Below, one piece after another: positions 28,701-31,700 of a stretch of 64,000 nucleotides of DNA. Each line of letters opens with the position of its first letter. The first letter of the stretch is position 1. Position numbers and translations under genes: made by a program. The stretch comes from Podarcis melisellensis (lineage: Eukaryota). The notes under the pieces were generated by a model. The model was not told where the DNA came from and did not search any database. It was given only the letters and a program-made list of their open reading frames with translations. The stretch is from NCBI GenBank assembly GCA_964234715.1, contig OZ174276.1. The stretch is one strand, 5' to 3'.

Positions 28701-31700
28701 CTTCATTCAGAGAATATGAGCTTTTGGGGGCTGCTTAGCAATAGAATCCAGAAGTTATGAGGACTGCTATTCTGCAAATGAATGTTCACCCTTGGAATGT
28801 TGTATTAGTGTTTAGAAAGAGTGATTTCTATCTCCAGAACATGCAGCATCCAAGGGGATATGGGCTTGAATAAGCTCCTACTTTGAGTTTTGGACGGCCA
28901 CACCTTGTCTTATTCCAGCTACAGCATCAGAGGTTTGCTTTGGCGTGCTCTAGTTTCATCAAGTTATCTGAACATCTTGGTTCCTTCCAACTCTACAATT
29001 CTATGATTCTATCTCAGTCTCCCTCTCTCCTTGAATTGTTTCTTCTTTCTGTTAAAGAATCACTTCATTTTGGAAGATAATAGGGCTTCCCTACCTGACA
29101 ATTTCCTTATTTGCCCTACCTTCAGCCCTGAGGGCAAAAGAGATTCGGAGAATTTGTGAGCTATTTTAAGCCTCATTGCATAGTCCTTGCTACTGCTGAT
29201 CTGGCAGGCCTTCCTCCCTCTGTATTAATCAAATCTGCCTGCTGTTCACCCTCTGATCAGCTGTGTAAGTGACCAGGCTCCCTGTATTTCTTTCTAAACA
29301 GAGAGAATATGGAATGAACTGTCTTGGAGCTTTTCTGAGCCTTAGCGTGGGGGCTTGGGAAAACCTGATATGGATGGCTGCCCCAGACTTGTTGCTGAAC
29401 TGACATGAATGCTATGGTCCAGGGAAGTGGGTTTGATGGAAGTCGAGAGCAGTCAGCTCAAGCCAAATGCCTGTGTGAATCAGTTGGAGGGGAATGTTAA
29501 GAGCTCTGCTGAATCTGGGACTGTGTCTGTTCTCCAGTTGCTGCCTTTACCCCTCTCTTCCTGTGGCGGGACAGGAAAAGCAGTGCCGCTGCCTCTACCT
29601 GTTGGCAAATAGCAATGACTGAAAAGAGTGCCCTCCTGGATCCTGATTGAGCTGCTTGGCTGTGTTTGCTCCGAGAGCAGAGCTGGGGCAGAGGAAAAGA
29701 ACCGGTGATAAAATAAAAGAGAAACATGAGCCATGGAGCTGAGGTGAACTCTCAAAACTCCAGCAAGGACAAAGGGTGTAAGATGTCGGCGCTACAGAAA
29801 CTGGAGAGTCTGGCAGGGCGGATCTTTTACTGGGGGCCACGGAGTGATGCTGGGGCACCGAACGTTGGGGAGGCAGCCTATGAATCTGAGCACACGGCAG
29901 CCTGGAATGAGCAGAGTGAGTTGACAAGGGAGCACGGTTTCCAGGGGTGCCAGAATCGGTGGGTTCCCCCGAGGCTCTGCTCCAGAACTGCTGCTGCTCT
30001 GTGCCTCTTGGTGCATGCGTATGCTTGTGGTTAAGTGTGTAACTGGAATCTGAAATAGGGCTCTGATATTTTTCAGAGAAGCCCGCAAGTGGCTATAGCC
30101 TTAGCTCTGACAGCCATTCTGGCTATGACTGTTGACTACCTCTTTCCTCAGGCTAAGCTAAAGTTTAGGGTGCTCAACTTTAATGAGGCCACAGCTGCTT
30201 GGTGTGTGGCTTTGATTTTGGCCTTAGAGAAGCCCCATCGGTTCTCAAAAGCCCACTGCAACTTCTTACTATTTGTTATCATCTTTACAAGCTCTAACTC
30301 TGCAAGTGTCTATTGCACAGAGTAGAGGTGGGGAGCCTGTAGCTCTCCCAAAGTCGTTGGGCTTCTGCTTCTATCAACCCTGGCCCAAATAGCCAATAGG
30401 AAGGGATGATGTGAGTTGTAGTCTAGTAACATTGGCGGGGCACAAGTTCCCCATCCCTGACCTAGAGAAAGGATAGCTGGAGCGTTCCTGGATGTTCTCC
30501 CACATTTTGGGGGAAGAATTGCAACTTTTTGGGAAGTTGTTGGCAAAGGTCATTATTAAGAAGCAAATTCTCTTTGCCTGTGTGTGTTTCAAAACTTTCT
30601 TCCCATTTTGACAGTTTTTCCTGCGGCCTCTCCAACTGATGTTGTCACTTTAGCTGTTTTGGTTAAAATGTGTGGTCAGAGTTGTTGACATAGGGAATTT
30701 CAGTCTGAGGTTGACAGAGTTGTGAGTGAAAGTCATGGGCTGATGATTGTTGCTTTTTCCTCTTTGCTGCCACTACCAGTCAGGATTGTAGCTTTTGTTG
30801 TTGACTTGATGTGATGTCATATTCTATTTCTGTCACTGGCTGTATCTTAATTCATGGTGTTGTCTACCTCTAGGGTGATGGGTTGTAAATAGATGGTAGG
30901 TCTTCTATTGTTCTGTCTGGACCACACATTACTCCTTCATCTAAGGCAAAAGGGAGTGAATGCAGTCTTTTCATGGATCCTCAAGTATGTTTAAACAAAA
31001 CAGTCACAATGTTTTGGCAATGCTGCTTGGTCTAAAATAGAAGCTTGTAGAACATCTGATGCCAGATTCTTCTTTGGCCCCTTTAATCTTTTGGCATTGA
31101 CACCTCCTCCATGCTGCATCTGAGTGTGTTGCACATGAAGGAGAGTGTTCAAAACCACCACCAGCACATTTTGGAACTATTTAGCATATACAATACACAT
31201 GTAGATTCTGTTCAACATTTACATGAAACTGCTGACAGAGGTCATTGTAGATTTTGGCTGTGGAGTCATCAGTATGCAGATGACAGCCACCTGTCTCTCA
31301 TTTTCATTGTTCCTGTAAGATAGTTGAAAGGCTGAATCGCCGTCTGATATCTGTGATGGACTGGATAGGGTGCAATGCGGGGAAACATAATTCAGACAGG
31401 AGAGGTACTGTTGGTAGTTGGACCATGTGATATGAGATTGGTTTTGCAGCCTGTTATGAGTGGAAAGTGTGAAAGTGCAGGTGCTTAGTTTGGGAATGCT
31501 CCTTGATCTGGGTCCTGTTTCTGCAGGTGGTGAGGGGGTGCCTTTTCCCGGCATCACCAGGTGCAACAGCTACCATCCTCCCTGACACAGGGGAATCTTG
31601 CCACAGTCATTCATCCTCCTCTAGTGACCTTCAGATGACAGTGCTGTAACTGTTTATGTGGGGCTGCCTTTCAAAAGTGCTTGGAAACCTCAATTCGTTG

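Follow-up and report, generated by a model that had tools for sequence, protein, structure and literature searches.

What is a 63-codon reading frame, begun by its own ATG and closed by a good splice donor, doing deep inside the first intron of a protein kinase A (PKA) gene? The question is raised by a stretch of 64,000 nucleotides from the lizard Podarcis melisellensis (GenBank assembly GCA_964234715.1, contig OZ174276.1), here called the window, in which the frame begins at 29726, inside intron 1 of the PKA catalytic-subunit gene and 22.5 kb past the end of exon 1-1. Positions are those of the window, and all features described lie on the plus strand. Very probably, the frame is the coding part of the lizard ortholog of PRKACA exon 1-L, an alternative first exon, with a proposed promoter of its own, that is spliced to exon 2 and gives CalphaL, a catalytic subunit with a non-lipidated tail. 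The exon is real, but it is a rediscovery. PRKACA exon 1-L and CalphaL were described by Soberg, Moen, Skalhegg, and Laerdahl (2017, PLoS One 12:e0181091; PMC5526564). The initial annotation of this stretch, made from its letters alone, spoke of a hidden exon, and this was overstated for an exon published in 2017. Its remark that a long Calpha form has been reported in non-mammalian vertebrates is borne out; that form is CalphaL, which is missing only in birds and mammals (PMC5526564). What is new here is a block-wise profile of selection, expressed as the ratio of nonsynonymous to synonymous divergence (dN/dS, or omega), the lack of a coding signature 5' of Met20, and a set of conserved non-coding blocks upstream.

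The anatomy of the exon is simple. From ATG 29726, with an in-frame TAA 12 nt upstream, 63 sense codons run to 29914. They are followed by one extra base, A at 29915, and then by the phase-1 splice donor GTGAGT at 29916-29921. The coding part (29726-29915) thus consists of 63 codons and the first base of a split Met codon. Exon 2 (53154-53215), the acceptor exon common to all isoforms, has an AG directly 5' and comprises TG plus 20 codons, opening TG AAG GAG. Joining 29915 to 53154 therefore restores a Met codon from A+TG and reads on in frame into KEFLAKAKE. The frame, the donor (CAG A/GTGAGT), and their distance into intron 1 are as initially annotated. The alternative that exon 1-L replaces is exon 1-1, whose coding part as read from the sequence is 7132-7177, comprising the Calpha1 start, 15 codons plus G, and a phase-1 donor GTGAGT with its GT at 7178. 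Exon 1-L thus has exon 1-1 of PRKACA on its 5' side and exon 2 on its 3' side. Its tail opens with MSH, or with MSA if Met20 is the start. In neither case is there an N-terminal Gly, so the tail could not be myristoylated as Calpha1 is, in keeping with the non-myristoylated isoform proposed at the outset.

Is the exon spliced as its anatomy suggests? Four runs were compared with window positions 28700-30700, two as contigs (X1 and X10) and two as raw bulk RNA sequencing (X23 and X24). The X1 contig (810 nt, depth 154) covers 29427-29915 and then continues for 30 letters, TGAAGGAGTTTCTTGCCAAAGCCAAAGAAG. This string differs from the genomic letters past the donor, and its single occurrence within the window begins where exon 2 does, at 53154. 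The X10 contig (627 nt), which has another organism label, covers 29319-29915 and also has 30 further letters beyond. Intron depth directly past the donor is zero in both X1 and X10, which argues that both contigs derive from spliced RNA rather than DNA. The 29915 to 53154 junction, which had been put forward as a check, is therefore present in X1, and the X10 match ends at the same base. In other words, the mRNA joins a long coding first exon to exon 2 in frame. Neither contig has an upstream exon at its 5' end. In addition, 14 contig sets of transcriptome size (65-148 Mb, flagged 'RNA?'), which derive from six studies and carry four organism labels, contain 53-84% of sampled words of 29560-29915, compared with 88-100% in genome-sized sets.

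The next link comes from conservation. A homolog search was made with the 102-residue read-through open reading frame (ORF) as query and scored on residues 1-63. On other Logan contigs it found seven ORFs, one identical and six with 75-84% identity, and it also found two turtle proteins. The Platysternon match carries the source name 'protein kinase, cAMP-dependent, catalytic, alpha', and in the Caretta partial model the exon 1-L N-terminus is joined to a Calpha-type exon 2/3 core reading KETGNHY. In an alignment of the DNA of seven contigs, the 189 coding nt are gap-free in 6 other reptile lineages (squamate-like and turtle), whereas the flanks have 3-142 gap positions per 100-200 nt. The first ATG (ATG1), Met20, and the heptamer A/GTGAGT are invariant across the aligned lineages, the donor in 7/7 other contigs. 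By the Nei-Gojobori method, dN/dS is 0.14-0.28 in all 21 of 21 pairs, and variable columns fall 20/20/44 over the three codon positions of the whole coding part. Selection is uneven along the exon. The helix block (ALQKLE..GRIF) is the most constrained part, with omega at 0.09 over codons 20-41. The value is about 0.5 in codons 42-53 and 0.11 in a second conserved block, codons 54-63 (29885-29914), in which Trp60 stands four residues before the junction codon. The RNA contig of organism B shows only two coding differences from the window, both synonymous (Ala42 GCT to GCG and Pro45 CCG to CCA), and 13 in the 5' untranslated region (5'UTR). Judged from these alignments, the exon is protein-coding and under purifying selection (codons 20-63), and it is common to squamate-like lineages and turtles.

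The published CalphaL tail is disordered, with an 'inducible' helix, a Lys/Arg and a Phe nine apart, a Trp near the end, and no N-terminal Gly (PMC5526564). The lizard peptide has the same features. AlphaFold2, given a nine-sequence alignment (A1), predicts one helix, residues 22-34 (29789-29827), with a mean predicted local distance difference test score (pLDDT) of 84 for residues 21-30. The other blocks have mean values of 50-68, and 16 residues in all reach 70. Outside the helix region pLDDT is 50-61, which is a proxy for disorder only. K25 and F34 are invariant, giving the Lys/Arg and the Phe nine residues later inside the predicted helix, and Trp60 is present in 8/8 sequences covering that residue. 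The hydrophobic moment also peaks over the helix stretch, although alone it is not significant (120/2000 shuffles reach the peak). The tail is thus predicted to be mostly disordered with one conserved amphipathic helix, and the amphipathic helix first suggested for the conserved block agrees with both the model and the omega of that block.

Which PKA catalytic gene hosts the exon? Soberg et al. (2013; PMC3625193) listed signature residues that tell Calpha from Cbeta. Numbered from Gly1, the window has Gln35, Thr37, Glu64, Gly66, and Ser109, all Calpha invariants. Residue 66 is the sole site without overlap between the paralogs, and Cbeta has Glu, Asn, or Asp there (PMC3625193). The Cbeta invariants Asp42 and Gln67 are absent, the window having His42 and Asn67. 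Signature residues 319 and 334 belong to exon 10, outside the window. The peptide of exon 3 was also compared with solved structures. PKA Calpha chains came first, at E 1e-20, and AKT next; Cbeta chains were missing from these matches, so the search cannot separate the paralogs. On its signature residues, then, the host gene is PRKACA, as initially annotated.

Where would transcription of exon 1-L begin? Contig pieces place its 5' untranslated part at 29427-29725, reaching at least 29319 in the second organism; the contigs themselves begin at 29319 (X10) and 29427 (X1). The flank at 29256-29426, a candidate promoter, has 72-80% identity to five squamate-like contigs, compared with about 40-60% in the downstream intron, and it includes conserved blocks such as CAGCTGTGTAAGTGACCAGGCTCCC and GTTGCTGAACTGACATGA. 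Conserved blocks of the 5'UTR include GCTCAAGCCAAATG, GGGACAGGAAAA, and AGCAATGAC. The roughly 450 nt of block-wise conservation upstream fits a dedicated promoter. GC content is 0.48 in this region, where there is no CpG island, vs. 0.59 at 6-8 kb, the CpG-rich promoter of exon 1-1. A separate observation is that the whole non-coding stretch 29256-29725 has 72-83% identity among squamate-like contigs, as high as the coding part. Among the upstream blocks, GGGACAGGAAAA is followed by CTGCCTCTACC. The GGAA core in these blocks may resemble ETS-type sites. The 5'UTR also has upstream ATGs at 29436, 29467, 29494, and 29615, with ORFs of 3-58 codons (29436-29648). None of the four is both in frame and open to the main ATG, and they may point to translational control.

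Not everything sits easily with an exon 1-L ortholog, and two rival readings draw on the observations that weigh against it. Could this be a chance open frame beside a cryptic donor, or a non-coding transcript of the kind destined for nonsense-mediated decay, without protein function? The ORF and donor alone are not beyond chance if taken as the sole anatomy. ATG frames of at least 50 codons that end at a phase-1 GTRAGT number one in the real intron and 0.44 on average in block shuffles, and 0.20 are expected per shuffled intron for frames of at least 63 codons, i.e., some 0.2-0.4 per intron of such size. A Pfam scan of the 63-residue peptide gives no family. X23 and X24, raw bulk RNA sequencing of a close relative (about 12.7 million reads sampled each), have no read on the exon. 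These two runs have no tissue labels and no normalization against the rest of the gene, and their null result suggests that expression is low or tissue-restricted, not ubiquitous at a high level. The RNA origin of the two runs with the splicing evidence is a guess, the contigs cannot define the true 5' end, so that start site and separate promoter are inferred, and the evidence for translation is indirect, from the purifying selection on codons 20-63. Nevertheless, a chance frame is hardly credible. It would have to be spliced precisely and in frame to exon 2 in two organisms, while keeping a dN/dS of 0.14-0.28, a third-position excess, freedom from indels, and an invariant donor as far as turtles. 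It is the RNA junction and the codon-level conservation that take the exon beyond chance, and the chance ORF was rejected on both. The other rival is that the gene is PRKACB and the exon the well-known Cbeta2 exon 1-2. Exons 1-1 and 2 contain AATAKKG and WENP, and exon 4 contains VRLEY, all of which resemble mammalian Cbeta. Moreover, the Calpha-invariant His68 is Tyr in the window (residues 67-68 at 55190-55195), although the 2013 data set had no reptile Calpha (PMC3625193). However, the other Calpha signature residues are those given above, the source of the turtle ortholog calls it catalytic alpha, and the exon 1-L N-terminus is connected to the KETGNHY core in the Caretta model. EYIPGG, GYIE, and the Cbeta-reminiscent features are all present in golden eagle Calpha1 (PMC5526564 S2 Table). 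PRKACB and Cbeta2 are therefore very improbable identities, rejected on the signature residues and largely refuted. As an aside, the Glu in GYIE (58618-58620) and the Ile in EYIPGG (57289-57291), shared with the eagle, look like sauropsid traits. Mammals have Gln and Val at these positions.

A third rival accepts the exon and its transcript but moves the start of the protein. Here Met20 (29783-29785) would be the main or a second start, giving a tail of 44 residues with the helix close to its beginning. The stretch of 57 nt that ATG1 opens would then be leader sequence, or both starts would be used to make two proteoforms. Codons 2-19 have no coding signature, a further point against the full 63-residue tail, whose translation from ATG1 is putative. 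Variable columns are spread evenly over the three positions of codons 2-19 (8/10/9), whereas codons 20-63 show a third-position excess (12/10/35), and omega falls from 0.57 in codons 1-19 to 0.09 in codons 20-41. In other words, coding constraint in these alignments is visible only from Met20 onward. Synonymous divergence is also unusually low in codons 1-19 (29726-29782), at 0.28 vs. 0.47-0.60 elsewhere in the exon. With amino-acid constraint relaxed there as well, a function of the nucleotides themselves may be at work near the start. Met20 itself is in frame, invariant in 9/9 sequences and has A at -3, so the second start suspected there at the outset is a genuine candidate, and with several upstream ATGs in the 5'UTR, initiation at the first AUG is not guaranteed. 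On the other hand, ATG1 is invariant with A at -3 in 7/7 lineages that cover it, and a scanning ribosome reaches it first, in frame. The 57 nt have no indel or in-frame stop in any lineage, compared with 3-18 gap positions in the 100 nt upstream. Moreover, the published CalphaL and Cbeta2 tails are poorly conserved outside the helix (PMC5526564), so weak constraint is expected even if this part is translated. A Met20 start is thus unlikely but deserves to be taken seriously. What if the leader has a purpose? In this hypothetical scenario, which is more doubtful still, reptile CalphaL would be made from Met20 or from both ATGs, with the 57-nt stretch and the conserved, upstream ATG-rich 5'UTR forming a translational control module. 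If true, the module would set the amount of helix-bearing Calpha in certain cell types, and this layer of regulation would have been lost with the exon in birds and mammals.

For the exon 1-L ortholog, a sequence of events can be proposed. Transcription would begin at an internal promoter in intron 1, about 300-400 nt 5' of the ATG (~29.3-29.43 kb) and 22 kb beyond the CpG-rich promoter of exon 1-1. A first exon of roughly 490-600 nt would then be spliced from the donor after 29915 to exon 2 at 53154. As a result, the 14-residue myristoylated N-terminus of Calpha1 would be replaced by a tail of 63 residues (44 if Met20 is the start), with the conserved SEHTAAW block adjoining the kinase A-helix. 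Catalysis would presumably be unchanged and expression tissue-restricted. With the catalytic core unchanged, the isoforms would be expected to differ in partner binding or localization through the helix. Indeed, in line with Soberg et al. (2017), the inducible helix most likely serves to bind partners, or to localize the kinase, in an isoform-specific manner. Perhaps Trp60 also covers the empty myristate pocket, as hypothesized by the same authors (PMC5526564).

Two further observations concern transcription around the 5' end of the exon. A low-depth X1 contig (4.4) joins 28794-28930 to 29300-29359, skipping 369 nt with GT..AG ends on the plus strand, and an X10 contig of depth 2.8 covers 29168-29342. 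Some transcripts may have a more distal 5' end and reach the 5' part of exon 1-L by splicing or by read-through. The second observation is a 35-nt repeat fragment at 28978-29012. In all four runs, it is matched by hundreds of raw RNA reads and by contigs with a summed depth above 25,000, every one of which continues into flanks that are unrelated. The fragment does not belong to the exon but to a transcribed repeat family of very high abundance.

Why does one more lizard exon matter? PKA Calpha is among the best-studied kinases, yet CalphaL is rarely named in the literature searched (PMC5526564, PMC6143667), and it has no known partner, tissue pattern, or structure. The window provides a clean genomic example of exon 1-L in a lizard with transcript support, and the selection on the helix and the SEHTAAW block marks those residues for mutation. 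The existing picture is unchanged. Exon 1-L occurs in most vertebrate classes and was lost twice, separately in birds and in mammals (PMC5526564), an account repeated in a 2018 review (PMC6143667). Losses confined to these two groups mean that non-avian reptiles have the exon, and the window confirms that they keep it.

How does the exon compare with the other N-termini of PKA catalytic subunits? Calpha1, from exon 1-1, shares the phase-1 donor, exon 2, and the catalytic core. It differs in having 14 residues, myristoylation at Gly1, and a CpG-rich promoter, whereas exon 1-L encodes 63 residues, lacks Gly1, and has no CpG island in its candidate promoter region. The short Calpha isoforms (exon 1-S and the mammalian sperm Calpha2) are likewise non-myristoylated and arise from alternative first exons in intron 1 joined to exon 2, but they encode only a few residues. 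Published 1-S exons lie between 1-L and 2 (PMC5526564). A candidate can be read from the window sequence at 39686-39692 (context 39610-39698), where a two-codon, phase-1 mini first exon, ATG GAT G/gtaagg, would give MD and a split Val. It lies downstream of exon 1-L and before exon 2, in the published exon order.

The closest relatives are the two long forms. Cbeta2, a 47-kDa isoform with catalytic activity, is enriched in lymphoid tissue (PMC1557514), and its exon 1-2 encodes about 62 isoform-specific residues (PMC1557514, PMC6143667). According to the literature this PRKACB exon is a paralog that occupies the corresponding place in its gene and shares the helix and Trp features (PMC1557514, PMC6143667); the difference is the gene, Cbeta and not Calpha. 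One result adds to the points against the reading weighed above. The 63-residue peptide had no significant Cbeta2 match in an exhaustive phmmer search or in a profile search with alignment A1. The former, against 1.8 billion representatives, gave 3 matches, all of the same reptile family and none a full-length CalphaL, and the latter found nothing beyond that family in libraries that may lack a reachable Cbeta2 entry. The paralogy with Cbeta2 rests on PMC5526564. With CalphaL itself the likeness is essentially complete. The species list of its 2017 description includes Anolis and Alligator (PMC5526564), and the lizard exon matches exon 1-L in position, in being a long first exon that starts with an ATG and is joined to exon 2, in lacking an N-terminal Gly, in its predicted disordered tail with K25 and F34 in the helix and W60 near the end, and in its presence in a non-avian reptile. 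Nothing essential differs, and the exon is very probably the ortholog in one more lizard.

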